A stretch of DNA of 63,642 nucleotides, the filler included, from Perkinsus chesapeaki ATCC PRA-425 (taxonomy: Eukaryota > Protista > Perkinsozoa): the NCBI GenBank assembly GCA_013115145.1. It is 8 parts of 8 records of this genome, joined end to end, with 100 filler letters (N's around TTAATTAATTAA, not from the genome) between each part and the next. Parts side by side here need not be neighbours in the genome. Positions count along the whole stretch, not along the records: positions 2,451 to 30,902 come from JAAPAO010000472.1; 7 more parts are not named here. One strand, given 5' to 3'. The notes beneath the pieces were generated by a model. It searched no databases. It was not told the origin of the DNA and was given only the letters and a program-made list of their open reading frames with translations. Numbering within the stretch: position 1 is the first letter of the stretch; every line of letters begins with the position of its first letter. The position numbers and the translations under genes are program-made. Positions 2,856-28,581 of the stretch are shown here, piece by piece.

Positions 2856-5063
2856 TTAGGCATGTACACTTTGCATTGGTATGAATTCCTAAAGGTAATA
2901 TAAAGAATATTGAAATGTATGTGTCATAATACGTACAATCGCAACTGTAGCAGCATTATCCTCTATTAATGTAGCATGCCCCCAGAATTCTGGTATATAT
3001 AATATATCACCTAATAATATTGAGATAGTAACACTCCTAAGCTACTCCTACCTGGTAGCTGTTCTAACTCTATAACATGTTCGACATCACTTCCACGCCA
3101 CACATCCCATTCAACACCCGATGGTAGATGAGACCAAAATGAATATCTTGATGGTTTTAAAAGCCACTTTTTCCGACCACATAATAATAACTATCATAAA
3201 AGTCATAACAATAATGATGCCTTTAACAACAAGCAGCAGCAGTAGGAGTAGTAGTAGGAGTAGTAGGAGTAGTAGTAGGAGTGGTAGTAGGAGTGGTAGT
3301 AGGAGTGGTAGTAGGAGTGGTAGTAGGAGTAGGAGTGGTAGTAGGAGTGGTAGTAGGAGTAGTAGTAGTAGTAGTAGTAGGAGTAGTAGTAGGAGTAGTA
3401 GTAGGAGTGGTATGTTACATTTAAAGCAGCATGATGAGTATGCATCTGTGATCCAGCTTTAGGTGGTCCAATACCAAACTGTGGATATCTAGCATAAGCT
3501 ACATTATTCGGTCCAAGTAAGCTGAGCAACGCCTCTCCGTAATATTTTATTAATGCTTGTTTATGGCCCAAACTGGCATCAAATCCATAAAGTGGTGCCT
3601 GACATGCCCTAACCGGGAATTGAACTCACGACCTTATTGTCATCACTTTCATATTCGTATCATGATTTGCATATTGTTGAATATATTGGGCTAATCTGAT
3701 ACTCTCCTGCCGATAACTGAATATATTATGTGCATAGTTCAATCTTTAAAGTAGTATTATCATCTTTACCCTAATATTTTGCCATAAGGTATTTGTGACA
3801 CAGCCAAAGTCTGAATGAGCAAACTATCGGGAATGCTACTGAATCCATTATCCCATACAAAGTGAGGTAGAAGTGAGCGTATAATAACCTGAACAATGGT
3901 AATGTTGGTGCTAATGACTGATATTAATCATAAGGTCGTCGCCGTGAACATGAGCTATATTACAGGTTTATTCATAGTAAGGTAATAATCCCATTTTATT
4001 ATACGTTCCTTATTGTTCAGCTTATTAAGGACATCATATTCTATACCATAATATTCTTTATTGTCCTCTATATTACTAATACCTCCACCAACAAGTGATA
4101 TTAGATAATTAGATCTAAATGTCAGATATCCCTAATTATTTAATATTTAATATCATCACATGTTTTGCCATCCCCAAGCCACTGCAAGATGAGCAGGAGT
4201 TCTACCATAATTATCGATTGAATTTAATACTCCTTCCAGATCACCATTTACTCGTTTAATTCCTTCAATTAGCTTGTTAATAACCTGATAACCACGATGA
4301 TGATCCTTTATCGTATTTGCTCTTGTTGTTGTTATAATGATTGCCTGTAGATTGCCAGAAGCTGCTGCTAAATGCATTGTAGTGCACCCATTATGATCTC
4401 TTCTATTAACATCAATATCATCCAAACTCATCGTTACATCACAAACATCACTTTGCCATTTATGTAGGCCCATTCGAACTTCCTCAGAGGACACTGGTCT
4501 ACACTGGACTGCTTGCTGCTGTTGCCTGTTGTTGTCTTTGCAGAATGTGTATCTTTACGACATATCTTTATATAGTATTAATATTGCCGGCTCCTTTACC
4601 CGTATAATGTATCTGGTTGTATTGACGGTATTCGTTTAGTTCCTGCCATTATCCTGTATTATTATTATATACTTTTATTTTAACATTAACCTACGCATTA
4701 GCCTTATGTCTTGGTGTTGCTAATAATGCTGCCATTAATGGTGTTCTATTATCAATTGAACTATGATGTGATGAAACATACATGGCATTTACATCTCTTC
4801 CTTGAATATCCTCTGAATTATATTATTTATAGTAATTCATAGTTATTGTATTACTTCTATTATTAACTATATTATTTGGCATAATCATTCCATCATTTGA
4901 AGTGGGCGGCCTTTGAAGATCCTTCAATGCATTTATTGATGTTGTCCTTCTAACATGATGATGTATCTATAATTTAATATTCTATATATTGCCTTTAACC
5001 TACTAAAGTAGACCATCGTGATGACCACTGTGGCACTAACCATCTACGACACCACCTTCTCAT
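2856..5063 (-). CDS. Multi-exon ankyrin-repeat + JmjC (JMJD8-like cupin) protein
   Basis: Ankyrin motifs DHNGCTTMHLAAASG and DNYGRTPAHLAVAWG. Spliced C-terminus QFGIGPPKAGSQMHTHHAALN|LLLCGRKKWLLKP..EQLPG|DILYIPEFWGHAT..EFIPMQSVHA*. The start (5063) is tentative. Confidence 0.8.
3238..3409. repeat. Compound AGT/AGG/GGT microsatellite inside a JmjC intron
   Basis: Runs of AGTAGG, AGTGGT and (AGT)n. It lies between donor AAT|GTAACA and acceptor ATAG|TTA on the minus strand. Confidence 0.9.
3599..3646 (-). other. 48-nt intron containing a tRNA 3' fragment (sense orientation)
   Basis: GTGATGACAAT-AAGGTC-GTGAG-TTCAATT-CCCGG-TTAGGGC-A-TGTCAG. Removal restores the frame ..DTNMK|APLYGFD.. Confidence 0.8.
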
Positions 5064-5760: not shown

Positions 5761-6368
5761 ATGACAACTATCCAACAGTTTATAAATAATGTAGTTGATA
5801 AGTAATATCGATCAAGTTTATTATTATTACATTATTTTTATTAGTGTTGATGGTATAGAATCGGTAACCATATCGGATAGGGAAGGTGTTGAGATAATAT
5901 CATCATCGTGTACGCGCAGTTGCCATCCAACTTGACGACTTAATTACCATATTTAGCTACCCAATCAAATAATAAGATAACGGATGAGGTGGAATCAGAT
6001 GAGCAAATCCTAACAACAATATTTTCCCTCACGAGCGATCAAGTAAGTGTCGTCATCTTCATCTACTATGTCTTAACGGTATAGTATTATTGTTATTAGT
6101 GTACAAAGCTTCCAGAGTTTGGTCCATGCTCATTTGTTATAGCTGGTTATGGTGATGGTAAACAACTACTACAAGCTACAGATAGTCCATTAGTTATAAC
6201 AATTATGGCTGATACACATGAAATTGATAGACGTAAGCGTTATACTTTACGTTATATTAATAATACTTGTTAGGTAATCTTATTGGGGTATTAGAGGATG
6301 TTAAGATAGCATTAAAAGAGATGAGAATGATGTTTGATCAACAACAACAACCACAGTACAACAATTAG
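5761..6368 (+). CDS. LAMTOR3: Ragulator subunit LAMTOR3/MP1-like protein (roadblock fold), 5 exons
   Basis: Spliced translation MTTIQQFINNVVDN|VDGIESVTISDREGVEII..ILTTIFSLTSDQ|CTKLPEFG..LLQATDSPLVITIMA.. resembles MP1 (VEGLHAIVVSDRDGVPVI..FLSTFALATDQGSKLG..LPLVVSFIA), compared from memory. Confidence 0.7.
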
Positions 6369-6632
6369 TTAGAATTATATTTCCTTATTTATAATATTAT
6401 TAAGTTAGAGTAACATAAAATATCTACAATGCTGCTCAAGCTTCCTTCATCCCCGTTACTCCTCCCTATTATTACTTACCAACGCATCCAGTAGTAACAG
6501 TATTTCGTTATGCTTGTTAATGCTTACAGTAATAATAACAATGCTTATTTTACGAACCGAAGTTATAGGGATAAGCATTTATTTCAGCCAATTGTAGCAG
6601 CAAGCGAGAGTAATATTTCATCATGGCTCGCG

Positions 6633-19162: not shown

Positions 19163-19454
19163 TGCCTCATCCGACCATTCTACTAGTAGATTACCATAAT
19201 TATATTCTATTGCCTCATCCGACCATTCTACTAGTAGATTACCATAATTATATTCCATTGCCTCATCCGACCATTCTACTAGTGANNNNNNNNNNNNNNN
19301 NNNNNNNNNNNNNNNNNNNNNNNNNNNNNNNNNNNNNNNNNNNNNNNNNNNNNNNNNNNNNNNNNNNNNNNNNNNNNNNNCCATAATTATATTCCATTGC
19401 CTCATCCGACCATTCTACTAGTAGATTACCATAATTATATTCAATTGCCTCATC
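19163..19454. repeat. 48-bp tandem repeat array spanning a gap
   Basis: Unit TGCCTCATCCGACCATTCTACTAGTAGATTACCATAATTATATTCYAT, seen on both sides of the N-run. Confidence 0.9.
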
Positions 19455-21414: not shown

Positions 21415-21514
21415 TATAACGCTTAGGTACAGTTCAATCGGACAACAGCAGCAACAACAACAACGCGTCACAGACCAACAGCTCGAGATTCCAAGCCACA
21501 CATTTCTTCTTGCT

Positions 21515-21550
21515 GAAGGCTCAGGTTCGATCCCGGGTAGTGACATTTTT
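21515..21550 (+). other. Intergenic tRNA-gene 3' fragment with oligo-T
   Basis: GAAGGC-TCAGG-TTCGATC-CCGGG-TAGTGAC-A-TTTTT. No convincing D-arm or anticodon arm upstream. Confidence 0.7.
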
Positions 21551-22379
21551 CCGATCAAAAATAATCCGAAGTCACCTTCATATGGGGTACTATCACAGGG
21601 TCATCCTGTTGTAATTGATGTTTGTATAGGTCACTGTTACTGGTCTTAATTCCACCTTATACGACACATAACCGTATAATTGACTAACATTGTTTATTCC
21701 TATTTATAGTTGTTGTTAACATGCCCTCACCAACAGGAGGAGGTAACCCTGAGGTCATTGCCCAGGCCATTGTGGAGAATAATGAGAATAGGACAATGCA
21801 TAGGTTATAATAGGGAGTAGCTGGCATAATACCATAGTCTATTGAAGGTGTACTACTGGTTCACCTTTAATGTGACCACTGTTGATATCAAAGATGTGTC
21901 GATCACACATTGATAATAATTGCGATGTATAGTTTATATTGAATGCTATATAAAATTAGACTATACTTGATGCTTATTACTGGGCTATCCAGAAAAATGG
22001 CCCACCCCCAAAAATTTAGATTGGGTGCGTGAGGGTTATAATGTGGGTTTGGTATCAACTTGTGCCTCTCTTTGCGTGGTCTACAACGGTCTATAAATCC
22101 GTAGTATGCTCCTTCCAGTCTTATTCACACTAAGAATACATTATATATATTGCCCTATCTAAATCTTCGAGTTGCCGGATCAGCGCGACGTGCTGCACCA
22201 AAGGTTACAATCGGTAAATGGCCTATGAGACAGGCCTAGTCATGGTATGAGTTATACCCTATTACTCTTACCTGCCATACAATTCCTGTATTTGATACCT
22301 TTGGTAACGCATAACCCTCTGAAGGGGAACTGCTACCAGACTCTATCACCAATTGGTAGTTACTTCACCGTTTATTAGG

Positions 22380-25300
22380 TCCAACTTGCTCCGACTGCAA
22401 TTGGATGAATTATTATCTTCATCGAATCCTAACTGGAACAAGCTTAATAAGCTCGATAGGACTGTGAAGGAGGTATCATACAAGCGAAGTATTATTACAG
22501 ATTATTATCTTATCAGATAATTAATAGGATAAAGAGCACTAAGAAGCGGGATTTAGGGGATAAGTTTGAGGAAGTAGTGGCATTCAAATTCAGCGTGATA
22601 ATTATAGTGGATTTGCTCAGGAGTTCCCAAAAATGTATTTCTATCCGAATAACCAACAGCACAAGTTTGTATTTTACCCACCAAAAGACGTACAAGTGAT
22701 TGGTAGTTATTCAAAGAAGGCATGTACTAAACCAAGGCTTAGTGTCGATATTGCGGTAGGATTAGGGGGGGGGAATATAGTATGGAGAATAGGGCCTGGT
22801 GAATTGACCTCACCATGTCTATTTAATAGACTCTATTGAATTCAGTGAATAAGAATGATAGTTTTATTATTATTCTTCCATCGGAACGTCTTTGTTAGGT
22901 TGTTATACCAGCTAAGTGCTTGCAGAGTAAAGATTATCTGAATGGAAGGTATCTAAATAAACGTAATATAAGTAGGGGATGGAAAGATTCTAATGAGGTT
23001 GATTAGGGAACGCCTATGTTGGAGAGTTGAAGAGGCAATTGATGGAAATGATAGATGAGTCGAAAGGTGAAATTGATATTGGATATCTTTGTGGGGATAG
23101 AGCCAAACCAATTGTAGAGGTAGTATCTCAGCTCCATGCATGCAAGATACATAAGAGGTTTACTTGGTTTTGACGGTTTCAGATATGTCCGAAAGGCTCG
23201 GCGTGGGTCATTAGATTGCTCCCCTGCATTAATGATGGAACTGACCCTACGGCTACATCTGGTCCGGAGTCAAGTTGGTTGGCGAGGCTTGGTTTGGATA
23301 GGAATTGCTATCGTGAAGATGGCCAAGTTGCTGGGGACCATCCGACACCTCTGTAAAAGGGTTCGCGTATTCCGCACTATGAAGATTTTGCGAGGTATCT
23401 TTCAGTTACAACTCGGAGGTTGCTGAGGATATCTTGATACACTCAAGCTTGTCGATTGGAGTCGATCATCCATCCCAGTTGAAGGCGGTGACACTGTTAA
23501 AGATCTGGGCATATCAGAGAGGGTTCCTTTATAGGAGGGATGCCGGAGAGAGCGCTGGACTGGCAGGGTAATAAAGGGGGTTATAGCGCAACGGTTAAGG
23601 TCACTGGTTAATGTGGAGGAGGCGGAGGTTCCATTCCTACGTAATGCATTTTAGATATCATATAGCAGCTATAGTGGAGCATGTTGTATCATCTTCAAGC
23701 CTTCCACAGTCTACTAGTGCCTATCAGATATTCAAGCTCGCATTGGTAAGATACGAAATAGGTTAACTCAAGGTCATTCAGGATTATCAGGTACTTCTTT
23801 CTTCAACCGATTGGAAAACCAATGCTTTGGTTTTGGGTTCTCAAGAAAAGGAGGAACGCTCACTTCCAAAGGCAGGTGATTCGGTAAGACATGTCCTGTA
23901 TTGTCACTACACTGGCCGGTTCAGTTAGTTGGATTAGTTAAACGACTTTGTTATCTCGCATACCATCCACGAAAAGAATGTAGTTCATCCGTTTACCCTC
24001 CCCCTACCTTCTCGACACAAAGAGTATCCTTTTTAAATATCATCCAGTAGGCTATAGTTGATTCTTGGATTGTCTGTGGTTACTAGGGACAATTTAAGTA
24101 TGATGTTAGAGGCCATCATAAATACAAATAGCATTCCCTCATCACACTGGAAATCGCAAGTGTTATATCATTATCATTATCATCAGGCTCAACTCTTTGC
24201 TGGTTTTGATAGAAGTTATAATATATTTTGGCGTATTAGTTTGGTAACAATGAGTGAGTTAAGTTTATCAGCAAAACACTCATTGGAGGTAAGTAGCTCT
24301 GCCTTCCCATTCCACTCCCGTCAAACCCGTTCTCAGTTGCTCGACGATCCCAAGGAGGCCGATCCTTTCATGGAGGTTTTCGGCGAGAGGTTATAATTTC
24401 GTGGCGCTGCGGTCATTTTTTAATTCTCTATTTTCTTAGTTCTGGTAGAACTCTGCGGTTACGTTGGGATTTTGCAATCACTTTCCCAATGACTGGAACC
24501 TTCTTGGATTCCCGTCAGTTGGAGGGGAAAGTAAATCGATTACTCGGGCGAGCGCTAAACGATAGACTGAAGTCATTGGCAGTTAGGAGAGGCAGCAAAG
24601 ATAGTGTTGTAATAGGAGGTAGTAGGGAAGAGGGAATGTGGTGAGGATGGTAATTAAATGGCGCGCGGTTTTTGTATAAGGTATCTTGGATAGCGAACAT
24701 ACCGGAAGGCTGTTGGACAAGGGACCATCACCGAAGGCAGAGGAGGCAGAGGCTTGGCGTATGGGAAAGAAATATCTTTAGGGTCTCGCACTGTGAAGAT
24801 TTTAGGCGAACTTTGGGGACCGAAATCTCAGTTAAGAAGGTTCAAGGATGGCACGATGCTCGAATGCTGTGTTTGGGATGGAAGTAGCGAGGAGTCGGCT
24901 GAGGGACAGATCATTGTGATAGGAGGGTATCTTAGGTTGAAGAGCGATCTATTCATTCAGGAACACGTCTTGAATCATCATGACATATCTTATGATCATG
25001 TATATGTTACTCCATTGGGTCACATCTCTGGATTGAGAACATCTGATAGGTTAGTCGAAAGGGAAGGGAGGAGTTGAAGGTGATGTTCGAATAGGAATTT
25101 ATGGGCCAACTTTGAGTTGTTGCGGAATTCATTGATGAGCATGGAGGAGGTACCATTAGCGATTAAAGATGTCCGTCCAAGTAGGAGAGGGAGGGAATTG
25201 AACCGGGGTCGTTTGGATGAAAGGCATGAATGTATCCCAGGTGATCCAGCATTCAGCTATACTTCTATTGATCAAGATGGGCCACATATATCTGGCTTGT

Positions 25301-27121
25301 TGGAGATTGTTATAGAACTGGAGTCTAATGCTGCATGGCCAACTAAGGTAGTCGTCATCCTCATTGAACCCGTTTTACAGTTTTTTAACTCGGTATATGA
25401 TAGGATATTCATCGGAATAGCAGGTCTGGTAGGTGGTATAATATATTGTTCCTTAACTACTACTTCCCTTTGGAGTCTTGTATATTACTACTACTGTAGA
25501 CGGGCCTGGGGCGGACTTCTAGTACTAGCTGAGATCTTATATGACTCTATGCTATCTCTTCGCTAAACTATGATATTCATGAAATTCCCTATTTCTGTAC
25601 AATATATACTATGCTTAGTGACTTGGCTAAAACTTGGCCGAAGTTCAGGCTTTGAATGTGCGGGTTCGAGCTTGGTATTGTTGTCAGCCTGAAGCTATAA
25701 TCGATACCAAGCTGGCATTGCTGTTGAAGATCCGTGAGGGGTTGTTGGTATCTGATGACTTTTCTGATGTTAACATATCAGCTACACAGAATCCACTTAT
25801 TGATGTACATGTTGGGGGACGTAGAGTAACATATAGATGTAGAATGTGGCATAGAGAAGAGGTGAGCTCAAATGGATGTACCAGGGATCGAACCCACAAC
25901 CGTTTCATCTTAGGTCCTCCAACTTGCCACAACGGCTACGACAACCACACCTAGCAAGCAAAGGATGGGTAGGGTTTGGGGTGGACAAGAGGTATTTTGT
26001 TGGATTCAGATTGGGAGAGTTTGTCACCATTGAGGACTCTTTGGTATGAGCCGACACATAGGAATTGGATACATTCAATGACGGCATTATATCCGGTAAT
26101 AATAATATCGCTGGGATTAGAACCCACGACCATTTTGATTAGTGTTTGGCACCGGCTATTCGAGCAGCCAAACGATGGTTGGATCAGAGGCTGTTACTAA
26201 GAGGAGTCGATCTTGATAACTTTGCGGAGTTGAGCATGATGTAGCGTTGAGGAAATGCAAGATTCGTCGAGTTGACCAAGATCTTATCAGGCACGTAATC
26301 ACCAGCGAGAATCCCCAATCTCCTCACACAGCGATGCTTTTATGGTTGAAACTTATTGAGAGTTGGCACAGAACTCAGAGGCCGGTGTAAGGTCTCGGGT
26401 TCGAATCCCACGACTTGCATTTTAATTGGCAGATATCTCCTACAATCACTAACCCCCGGTGAGGATGGTGATGAGCAATCATCTGAGGAAGCTCAGAACT
26501 TACTGATGAAGTTGCAATCATGTTACGAAGCTGTATCGGTCTCTACTAGGCCACGAATGTGGATAAGTAGTCGACTGGACCCACACTGTCTTTTGGTAAG
26601 AATAAATACCCTCACTGGGATTTGAACCCGCATCAGGTTCGCACACCTAGTAGCGCATTATGTCAAAGAATGGCTTCATTAGCAACAGCTTCGTTAAAAC
26701 ATGCATTGAACAGCCGATGGGATCGAATACTCAAACCACTACCATCTGAGAACCTGTCCTCTTTGGACGTTGTTATTACATTGACCAAGAATAAGGTTGA
26801 CGTATCCCTTCTGCAGCAGCAATGCACTCGACACTTTGGTTCAGCCGGAGTCTTCCTGTGTGGGAGCCGTGGAACTATAATGGGTATTAAATGGCGACCA
26901 GGATCGAGCGTGGCATCGAGAAAACAGCTGGCTGGGGGAATGCAACACTTGGCTGTAACGGAGGACTTGGTTGTTCCTAATTATGCATGGGTGTTGAAGA
27001 ATATTGTCAGCGGAATGTGTGGTGGAGTGGTTAAGAATGTAAAGATGCATGGGGTAAGGTCGTTGGTTGGTTCCCTTGTCATGTCACATTCCCTATTCAG
27101 GTGGCCACCAATCTTCTCTAA
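22380..27121 (+). CDS. UTP22: Nrap / U3 snoRNP-associated protein 22 (NOL6/Utp22), many exons
   Basis: SNLLRLQLDELL, AYQIFKLAL, LWGPKSQLRRFKDGTMLECCVW, WPTK|PEAIIDTKLALLLKI and IRAAKRWLDQRLL match the Nrap family pattern. The true start lies upstream of 22380 and is unresolved. Confidence 0.85.
23600..23654 (+). other. Nrap intron with a degenerate tRNA 3' fragment (sense)
   Basis: GAGGC-GGAGG-TTCCATT-CCTAC-GTAATGC-A-TTTT-AG. Removal gives ..IAQRLR|YHIAA.. Confidence 0.55.
25181..25240 (+). other. Nrap intron containing an antisense tRNA-Glu(TTC)-like anticodon + T-arm fragment
   Basis: Reverse complement ATTCATGC-CTTTCAT-CCAAA-CGAC-CCCGG-TTCAATT-CCC. Removal gives KDVRPS|DPAF. Confidence 0.65.
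25862..25913 (+). other. Nrap intron containing an antisense tRNA 3' fragment
   Basis: Reverse complement AAACGGTT-GTGGG-TTCGATC-CCTGG-TACATCC-A-TTT. Confidence 0.8.
26096..26142 (+). other. Nrap intron containing an antisense tRNA 3' fragment
   Basis: Reverse complement AATGGTC-GTGGG-TTCTAAT-CCCAG-CGATATT-A-TT. Removal gives TALYP|CLAPAIRAAKRW. Confidence 0.75.
26387..26432 (+). other. Nrap intron containing a sense tRNA 3' fragment
   Basis: GT-AAGGTC-TCGGG-TTCGAAT-CCCAC-GACTTGC-A-TTTT-AATTGGCAG. Removal gives QRPV|YLLQ. Confidence 0.85.
26596..26636 (+). other. Nrap intron containing an antisense tRNA 3' fragment
   Basis: Reverse complement CTGAT-GCGGG-TTCAAAT-CCCAG-TGAGGGT-A-TTT. Removal gives DPHCLL|VRTPS. 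Confidence 0.8.
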
Positions 27122-27387: not shown

Positions 27388-28581
27388 ATGTCACGATTAC
27401 ATCCATTTATATTTTTATTCATTACCATACCAGTTCTTTCTCGAATAGCGTCAACAACCTCACCATTAACTACTACTCCGACACCCCTTAATGATAATGA
27501 TGATGTTGTTGAAGTTTCTACTCAAATGTCATTTGACAATCCCCCTCTCGATCGGATATACTTTTGTCCTCGAGATAAAATAGACGAGTCGCTCGGTAAG
27601 ACCAGTTGGCCAGCTTATCCAGTTTATTTAAATACCTCCGAATGTCTTGGTTATGAACAGATAATGAATCTGCCTAATCGTCAAGAAAATCTCCATTGTA
27701 TTGCGAATGCTACCGATGCACTTATAACCGCTTTGACTAGTGTTGGTCTAAAAGATAGCTTCTTGGTTTGGGGTAGCCTACTTGGATGGTATCGTCATAA
27801 TGGTGGTGTTATTCCATGGGACTTTGATGGTGATATCGCTGTTATGAAGGAATCTTGTAACGCTACAATCGATGCTTTACATTCAAAAGGGAGTGGTGTC
27901 CGTAATATAGCTCAAGCTGTTGATGCCGAGCTACCAGAGGGATACCATATGGTCACAATCACTGATGATGGTGTCAGTACTGATCTCACTACTTTCTCAA
28001 ACTGTGAAGTTGGTGAATTGAGAATTGAACGGTATTGGCCTGGAACTGAAGATCGTATGTGTTACACTGATCTGTGGTTCCTTGACCATGAATCTAGTGA
28101 AGGTGCAGATTGCCATTGTGATTGGAATGTTCCATCACCTAGAGTTTGTATTGAAAATCCATATTATTCTCGTGGCTGTATTGCTGAAGCAGATATGTTT
28201 CCGTTGAAGGATGACAAATTGGTGGATAAAGTATCAGTAAAAGTTCCACATAATCCATTAGGAGTTTTAAGACGTCTTTATCCGACTGGTATTGACATTA
28301 AAAACATGGCTCCTGTACCAAAGAATCCTTTATTCGAGAATGATTGGTCGATTGTAATATCGGCGGCTCCACCAACAGCTACCGCAACAGTATCAACAAG
28401 CCACCATCAAAGCAATGGATATGGTAACAGCCTGTGGTGGTATTTTATAGCAGCTATTGGTGCCGTTGTAGTATCAGCGTGTATATATGTCCTTATATCA
28501 AGCCGTAAACATATTGTTGAATATAAACGAACACCTCCACAAAATGAAGATGCTAACAAGCCTGAATATGTGATTGAATAA
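27388..28581 (+). CDS. LicD/fukutin-related nucleotidyltransferase-fold protein; intronless type I membrane protein
   Basis: Signal peptide MSRLHPFIFLFITIPVLSRIAS, motif WGSLLGWYRHNGGVIPWDFDGDIAV, C-terminal TM WWYFIAAIGAVVVSACIYVLI. Confidence 0.85.
   Translation: MSRLHPFIFLFITIPVLSRIASTTSPLTTTPTPLNDNDDVVEVSTQMSFDNPPLDRIYFCPRDKIDESLGKTSWPAYPVYLNTSECLGYEQIMNLPNRQENLHCIANATDALITALTSVGLKDSFLVWGSLLGWYRHNGGVIPWDFDGDIAVMKESCNATIDALHSKGSGVRNIAQAVDAELPEGYHMVTITDDGVSTDLTTFSNCEVGELRIERYWPGTEDRMCYTDLWFLDHESSEGADCHCDWNVPSPRVCIENPYYSRGCIAEADMFPLKDDKLVDKVSVKVPHNPLGVLRRLYPTGIDIKNMAPVPKNPLFENDWSIVISAAPPTATATVSTSHHQSNGYGNSLWWYFIAAIGAVVVSACIYVLISSRKHIVEYKRTPPQNEDANKPEYVIE

Follow-up and report, generated by a model that had tools for sequence, protein, structure and literature searches.

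The Nrap locus and its introns

The window analyzed here is a stretch of 63,642 nucleotides (nt), filler included, of Perkinsus chesapeaki ATCC PRA-425 DNA, in which eight parts of eight records of the genome are joined end to end. The locus under study lies on the window contig JAAPAO010000472.1 of assembly GCA_013115145.1 (window positions 2,451 to 30,902), and is an Nrap gene in which several minimal introns contain a B-box (tRNA positions 52–62) within the relic of a tRNA gene, mostly of its 3′ part. The annotated protein of 991 amino acids, P0001, which was retrieved by a search of protein representatives, is matched without any difference by 26 plus-strand exons that 25 GT..AG introns separate, and pieces of the open reading frames (ORFs) match the Pfam domains Nrap D2–D4 on the same strand. 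Excision of the introns restores both the frame and the homology, as is characteristic of U2-type introns. The shortest has 41 nt and the longest 575 nt, the median being 48 nt (n = 25); Perkinsus introns are mostly shorter than 100 bp according to an earlier study (PMC3101222). The gene and the six introns with an exact B-box motif are as follows.

21721–27118, plus strand: Nrap (Utp22/NOL6-like) gene; exact mapping of P0001; Pfam Nrap D2–D5
23568–23654, plus strand: intron 8 (I08), 87 nt; a whole decayed relic of tRNA length, sense; B-box module at 23618–23652 with the end GCA-TTTT-AG; B-box retained in both relatives described below (L001 and L003)
25181–25240, plus strand: intron 17 (I17), 60 nt; antisense tRNA relic; module at 25179–25213, minus strand; no T-run; conserved over its full length (0.72)
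25862–25913, plus strand: intron 19 (I19), 52 nt; antisense tRNA 3′ part; module at 25869–25903, minus strand
26096–26142, plus strand: intron 21 (I21), 47 nt; antisense tRNA 3′ part; module at 26099–26133, minus strand
26387–26432, plus strand: intron 23 (I23), 46 nt; sense tRNA 3′ part; module at 26389–26423, then A-TTTT
26596–26636, plus strand: intron 24 (I24), 41 nt; antisense tRNA 3′ part; module at 26603–26637, minus strand; 3′ splice site from the variable loop

The initial annotation, made from the sequence alone, had placed six introns with the motif GGTTCNANYCC in this gene, and all six hold an exact copy. Five of its intron positions (25181, 25862, 26096, 26387 and 26596) are exact, whereas the first intron, given as 23600–23654, is corrected to 23568–23654 because the exact mapping of P0001 and an RNA contig junction, 23567|23655, both place its start there. 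Introns 3, 4 and 5 are confirmed by RNA contigs that carry the same species label; at intron 8, the alignment of one contig stops at 23567 and the loose end beyond it matches 27 of the 30 letters of 23655–23684, which supports the junction. RNA evidence of the kind that had been proposed was obtained for these four junctions, and introns 17 to 24 have no RNA contig cover. Introns without RNA junctions rest on the exact protein mapping, on conserved positions with unequal lengths in two relatives and, for intron 17, on BLASTP: because P0001 aligns to a fungal Nrap ungapped across the junction, the in-frame 60-nt segment of intron 17 is non-coding.

tRNA-gene 3′ ends within minimal introns

The motif GGTTCNANYCC occurs seven times in the window, as compared with 0.22 expected, and shuffled sequences never contained more than one copy. 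All seven matches fall within 21524–26628, six of them in Nrap introns and the seventh (21524) in the spacer upstream of the gene. When one mismatch is permitted, 13 matches are found against a background of about 8, with no added excess. Read in the tRNA sense, each module begins with a remnant of the variable loop (often AAGGTC), continues with an arm of 5-7-5 nt and a 7-nt segment, and in six of the seven copies (five of the six intronic copies and the spacer copy, intron 17 being without) is followed by a discriminator A and a T-run of TT to TTTTT. The probability of this discriminator and T-run architecture is about 2e-9, or about 9e-9 when five offsets are allowed. No copy in the window has CCA after the discriminator.

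Two intronic modules are sense (I08 and I23) and four antisense (I17, I19, I21 and I24). In the sense copies the T-run adjoins the 3′ splice site, and in the antisense copies the corresponding A-run lies directly downstream of the 5′ splice site; in introns 23 and 25, GTAAGG at the 5′ splice site and AAGGTC of the variable loop overlap. Modules differ in how far their tRNA-like part reaches in the 5′ direction: 5 nt, about 15 nt, 33 nt or the full length. The orientations, the tRNA spacing with discriminator A and T-run in five intronic copies, and the absence of CCA had all been described correctly in the initial annotation. Its T-arm holds for the 5-7-5 spacing but not for the pairing, which is weak outside G52-C62 and G53-C61 (10 of 21 outer pairs formed, about 8 expected).

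These sequence features give good support to the view that the intron bodies derive from tRNA genes or pre-tRNAs, because the AAGGTC variable loop, the T-loop and adjoining invariants (G53, T54, T55, C56, A58 and C61), the 7-nt acceptor strand, the discriminator and the oligo-T stand at exact, fixed spacing, with graded 5′ extents and no CCA. Some introns also resemble each other beyond the B-box: introns 19 and 21 over 23 nt, introns 21 and 24 over 18 nt, and introns 7 and 14 at 14 of 15 nt. The best of 1386 shuffled comparisons falls short of each of these.

No tRNA gene was found by ARAGORN in the piece searched, and the Rfam search gave no tRNA match at E ≤ 10, including searches of 106–111-nt stretches. 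Intron 8 and the spacer relic as whole tRNAs were therefore not supported by either and were rejected; their sole weak Rfam match (E = 1) is a plastid untranslated-region family, the consensus of which resembles an antisense tRNA by reading. Folding of seven introns gave z-scores of −0.9 to +1.2, no better than shuffles. Several other readings were discarded as well. An A-box-like string 44 nt upstream of the intron 19 B-box suggested that the 5′ half of an antisense tRNA had been exonised as exon 20, but the peptide of this exon aligns ungapped to a fungal Nrap. The B-box as a branch point does not fit yUnAy, and better candidates lie closer to the 3′ splice sites. A primer-binding-site-like complementarity to mature tRNA 3′ ends lacks TGG/CCA. 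Matches of 21–31 nt between other genomic contigs and Nrap are mostly due to chance by estimate (5 kb against a search space of 88 Mb) and were left unused, including the 31-nt match at 25193–25223, which stands out among them.

Conservation among three Perkinsus lineages

Downstream of Nrap lies a single-exon LicD gene, 68% identical to a Perkinsus olseni protein, and through this neighbour the P. olseni locus was reached on a contig (L003) with the same gene order as the window, Nrap and then LicD. ORF-based searches for relatives yielded one more Nrap orthologue, in a Logan assembly (L001), as the only result for Nrap; with the 3.6-kb gene they yielded none. In P. olseni, two LicD genes follow Nrap in tandem (L003 4877–6022 and 7673–8773), both of which match window positions 27508–28358, where one copy is matched. 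The two orthologues are diverged: nucleotide identity is 73–78% between L001 and L003 and 66–71% between either and the window. Between the window and L001, amino-acid identity is 0.81, and four-fold degenerate sites are identical at 0.363, as compared with 0.253 for unrelated sequences, which corresponds to a synonymous divergence (dS) of about 1.4 by Jukes-Cantor estimate.

All 23 alignable Nrap introns occupy the same positions in the window, L001 and L003, with unequal lengths. The comparison of intron presence in relatives that had been suggested at the outset was thus made, and gives no visible gain or loss. Intron interiors of the window and L001 are identical at 0.45–0.55, the level of shuffled sequence (0.48 ± 0.055), with the exceptions of introns 17 (0.72), 22 (0.82) and 23 (0.72). 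Against this neutral background, 59 of 66 B-box positions are identical between the window and L001 (P ~1e-11 at p = 0.5), and all six intronic B-boxes are present in L001 on an unchanged strand, four of them as exact GGTTCGAATCC. G53, T54, T55, C56, A58 and C61 are invariant in 18 of 18 copies (six modules in three lineages). The per-position score over the three lineages is 0.46 in the acceptor, 0.54–0.59 in the outer stem and 1.00 for these six universal nucleotides. Changes in the stem are non-compensatory, as in intron 21, where GTGGG/CCCAG in the window corresponds to GCAGG/CCCAC in L001. A T-run after the discriminator, present in six of seven window copies, is found in five of nine P. 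olseni copies, and two or three of six survive in L001.

A covariance model (R1) trained on the modules of the window and L001 was applied to the untrained P. olseni locus. It gave eight matches with E < 1e-3, all in Nrap (introns 8, 10, 17, 19, 21, 23, 24 and 25), with a weak match in intron 20 and none in the other 9 kb. P. olseni intron 21 (L003 3679–3754) has a perfect inverted repeat of 7 nt (ATGGCGG ... CCGCCAT) on either side of its module; the repeat is absent in the other two lineages and may be due to chance.

These comparisons bear on the age and fate of the relics. As judged from sequence, the relics predate the split of the three Perkinsus lineages and have drifted to noise save for the B-box with its invariant universal nucleotides. 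Purifying selection on the B-box, which is more conserved than its neutral surroundings, is strongly supported by the same alignments.

Further relics and specificity for Nrap

Further candidate relics lie in and around the gene, and one in another gene.

27054–27100, plus strand: intron 25 (I25), 47 nt; sense module, decayed (GTAAGGTCGTTGGTTGGTTCCC...); R1 gives E = 0.13 for the window and E = 7e-5 at L003 4686–4720, the module being well preserved in P. olseni
23353–23405, plus strand: intron 7 (I07); probable decayed sense relic (GGGTTCGCGTATTCC ... TATGAAG-A-TTTT), with CGCACTRTGAAGATT common to intron 14; read by eye, weaker
24759–24805, plus strand: intron 14 (I14); probable sense relic with the T-loop deleted (AGGGTCTCG..CAC TGTGAAG A TTTT AG); read by eye, weaker
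21470–21549, plus strand: tRNA-length relic in the spacer; B-box; acceptor strands pair at 6 of 7 positions; A-TTTTT; R1 31.5 bits; no call by ARAGORN or Rfam
3599–3646, minus strand: putative 48-nt GT–AG intron of another gene; sense module AAGGTC GTGAG TTCAATT CCCGG TTAGGGC A; R1 match at 3601–3635, E = 5.6e-5

The spacer relic sits in the 621-bp spacer between the Nrap ATG and a divergent gene. Excision of the putative intron at 3599–3646 joins two ORFs in frame and its retention gives a stop, by reading of the translations; it has no RNA cover, and its module was absent from the R1 training set. By eye, introns 12, 13 and 16 look like decayed relics in addition to introns 7 and 14. In all, relics of tRNA genes make up the greater part of no fewer than eight of the 25 Nrap introns, and probably of some twelve.

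In each of the three lineages, introns 7 and 14 (23373–23390 and 24788–24803) also share the motif CGCAC-NNN-GAAGATT. The variable middle of the motif differs less between the two introns of one species (TAT/TGT; AGC/AGC; GCC/GC) than between orthologues, a pattern that suggests concerted evolution or a common trans-acting partner. Intron 22 (26241–26290) is the most conserved intron (0.82 with L001); it has no intact B-box, and TTGAGGAAATGCAAG is identical in the three lineages. In antisense it looks like the 3′ end of a tRNA from which some letters have been deleted (CGAATC..TTGCATTT), it has CTTGCATTT in common with the adjoining intron 23, and its retention would place a stop codon directly after the exon (..ATG ATG|TAG). 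P. olseni intron 12 (L003 2059–2142) contains a perfect A-box, TGGCGCAGTGG, and then a T7 run; the window has TGGCGCTGCGGTCATTTTTT in this intron (24390–24439), and L001 has lost the A-box. This stretch may be the relic of a tRNA 5′ part.

Elsewhere in the window, the motif search and R1 found neither a B-box nor a module in the neighbouring coiled-coil gene, which has many short introns. Nor is there a module in the three RNA-confirmed introns at 5.9–6.3 kb (5910–5956, 6043–6099 and 6233–6273), none of which has a B-box; they belong to a small plus-strand gene (5845–6389), the first intron of which begins with GTACGCGCAGTTGCC and is faintly D-arm-like. Three further features are recorded: a sub-threshold match to the C/D small nucleolar RNA SNORD47 in an AT-rich stretch (4836–4901, minus strand; 23.7 bits, E = 2.3), a long Tyr/Ser-rich repeat run (YYS/YHS) with which the ORF downstream of the 3.6-kb module intron ends (3300–3420, minus strand), and a run of N, an assembly gap, within the neighbouring minus-strand gene (19282–19386).

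Selection on the B-boxes and rival explanations

TFIIIC is the known reader of the B-box, and the modules match the B-box consensus GGTTCGANTCC, from which binding is predicted. The reading that we favor, and to which we give about even confidence, is that ancient tRNA-gene relics in either orientation, mostly 3′ parts, form the bodies of minimal introns, and that purifying selection maintains their B-boxes as double-stranded DNA sites, most likely resembling extra-TFIIIC (ETC) sites. The selected object is probably a double-stranded DNA site, because sense copies are no more conserved than antisense ones, and because the conservation is accompanied neither by stem compensation nor by RNA stability and is limited to the internal promoter element of RNA polymerase III (Pol III). 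The predicted TFIIIC sites, which have no functional tRNA output, would then form an array of six to nine at the Nrap locus. The initial annotation had offered selected intronic TFIIIC sites as one of two explanations; selection is strongly supported (59 of 66 positions; 18 of 18 copies), and we infer TFIIIC as the candidate selecting agent from the identity of the element.

Several observations weigh against this reading. The module cluster is specific to Nrap in the window and in P. olseni, a restriction that this reading does not explain. Two window copies have C or T at position 57, an unusual state in a tRNA. T-runs persist in some copies, and a pure TFIIIC site does not need them. In addition, introns 17 and 22 and the motif of introns 7 and 14 are conserved outside any B-box, which indicates that additional constraints act on these introns. 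The comparison covers three lineages at one locus.

Alternatively, the modules could be working Pol III units nested in the introns, promoted by the B-box and terminated at the T-run, from which small tRNA-like or antisense RNAs would arise. The spacer relic and intron 8 are as long as a tRNA and have T-runs as well as A-box-like and B-box elements about 44 nt apart, and the A-box and T7 run of P. olseni intron 12 point in the same direction, as does the frequency of T-runs in the window and in P. olseni. However, most modules begin at the variable loop and hence have no A-box region, neither ARAGORN nor Rfam recognizes a tRNA, and acceptor and trailer are unconserved, with few T-runs left in L001; such units are unlikely. 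It is quite improbable that the motif works at the RNA level, forming in the pre-mRNA a hairpin like a T-arm to which a splicing regulator, T-loop modifying enzymes or, in a feedback loop, the Nrap protein itself could bind, because four of the six copies are antisense in the transcript and equally conserved, the outer stem pairs are neither maintained nor compensated (intron 21 in the window and L001), and folding energies are at the level of shuffles. The restriction of the cluster to Nrap and the conservation of introns 17, 22 and 23 past the B-box would suit such a hairpin. Nrap presumably has a CCA-adding-enzyme-like fold, in line with the Utp22 literature; the structure matches also include CCA-adding enzymes (TM 0.33–0.34/0.56), but they concern another protein, not the Nrap of the window.

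Were the relics neutral, the B-box could have been kept by repeated short gene conversion, either from abundant tRNA genes or among modules. Perkinsus marinus is unusually rich both in Dada transposons, which target tRNA genes, and in tRNA genes themselves, with hundreds of copies of some and >500 copies of five tRNA gene types (PMC3706591); the greater likeness of introns 7 and 14 within species is also in line with conversion. Conversion tracts would nevertheless have to be about 11 nt long and to end at the B-box edges, and the adjoining stems and acceptor differ between modules and species. Position 60 would also suit conversion, in that four P. olseni modules have C there and the remaining modules T, but it is a free pyrimidine at which parallel T-to-C changes are expected in a GC-gaining lineage. 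Concerted evolution is an unlikely cause of B-box retention, and neutrality of the relics maintained by conversion is very unlikely. The shortness of the motif is all that speaks for chance or an artefact of the gene model, an explanation of practically negligible probability that is refuted by the motif counts, the exact gene model and the cross-species data.

Possible origin of the introns

The other explanation offered initially was intron gain by capture of tRNA-gene or pre-tRNA fragments. The tRNA origin of the intron bodies stands, but a gain event is not visible because all 23 alignable introns are already common to the three lineages. Copying of tRNA genes, or of primary transcripts of Pol III, is the most plausible way in which the fragments entered, because oligo-T is retained, CCA is absent and 5′ truncation is variable; truncated copying fits because the 5′ extent varies. 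The variable loop (GT-AAGGTC), or the T-run with AG, would now serve as splice sites or adjoin them. Accordingly tentative, and rather improbable as a whole, is an extension of the favored reading in which 5′-truncated copies of tRNA-gene 3′ ends or Pol III transcripts seeded a burst of minimal introns in an ancestral Perkinsus gene and supplied splice signals, the B-boxes then being kept as an intragenic TFIIIC array. Insertion into older introns followed by shrinkage is an alternative to intron creation that the data allow.

If such seeding took place, it would constitute an undescribed route of intron gain, from a source beyond those listed for transposon-derived introns, and a new setting for Pol III factors within a gene of RNA polymerase II (Pol II). 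If the B-boxes bind TFIIIC, they would represent a rare ETC case in which long-term purifying selection can be demonstrated from sequence alone, in an alveolate parasite and packed into the minimal introns of one ribosome-biogenesis gene. The function of TFIIIC-bound sites (insulation, nuclear positioning or Pol II interference) could be tested at a compact locus in a culturable organism. Introns of 40–50 nt can hold selected DNA elements, which bears on the treatment of intronic sequence in comparative genomics.

Comparison with known systems

Topical literature searches returned no description of introns made of tRNA 3′ parts. Introners of Micromonas, Aureococcus, fungi and dinoflagellates are like the Nrap introns in that an inserted repeat of either orientation provides the intron body and the element ends partly provide the splice sites (PMC11282704), and the likeness of some introns within Nrap over 15–23 nt is also introner-like. 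Nrap introns appear to differ from introners in several respects. No terminal inverted repeats or target-site duplications were evident by eye at the junctions, and the intron folds are not hairpin-like, although age could have erased such marks. No near-identical family was seen in a comparison of about 50 kb of Perkinsus sequence, in which one further module lies in another gene, and presence/absence differences are lacking among the 23 alignable introns of the three lineages. The source, the 3′ part of a tRNA gene, differs as well: the sections consulted of a 2024 review of transposon-derived introns make no mention of tRNA- or SINE-derived introners (PMC11282704; SINE, short interspersed nuclear element).

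Like Nrap modules, tRNA-derived SINEs (e.g., MIR, TFIIIC-binding B-box elements) are tRNA-related B-box sequences scattered in introns. SINEs keep a tRNA 5′ head with both the A- and B-boxes, a body and a tail, a layout that the modules do not have, whereas the modules represent tRNA-gene 3′ ends with discriminator and oligo-T. The initial argument that the sequences differ and so do not derive from one SINE is right as to the layout but weak in itself: sequence difference carries little weight because neutral sites are saturated, and several intron pairs are alike beyond the B-box. Intact tRNA genes nested in introns resemble the modules in location and in the Pol III terminator, but the modules have no cloverleaf or acceptor pairing and are not detected by ARAGORN or Rfam. 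In intron gain of the Daphnia type, a double-strand break takes up filler DNA or cDNA. Such gain would account for unrelated short inserts of either orientation at Nrap, but no gain event can be observed there, and the model does not predict later conservation of a B-box.

The closest precedent appears to be the ETC sites of Caenorhabditis elegans, which fall on CeRep3 tRNA-pseudogene-like repeats, are intron-enriched and are clustered (PMC6950938). Unlike ETC sites, a Nrap relic fills a whole intron of 41–87 nt, adjoins both splice sites and is mostly without an A-box, and the array lies within one gene and is conserved at a dS of about 1.4, TFIIIC occupancy here being predicted. What the Nrap modules have in common with the C. 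elegans sites is that both are non-working, tRNA-gene-like relics with a strong B-box that prefer introns and cluster in cis (PMC6950938), and the ETC sites of yeast and human likewise consist of a B-box only.

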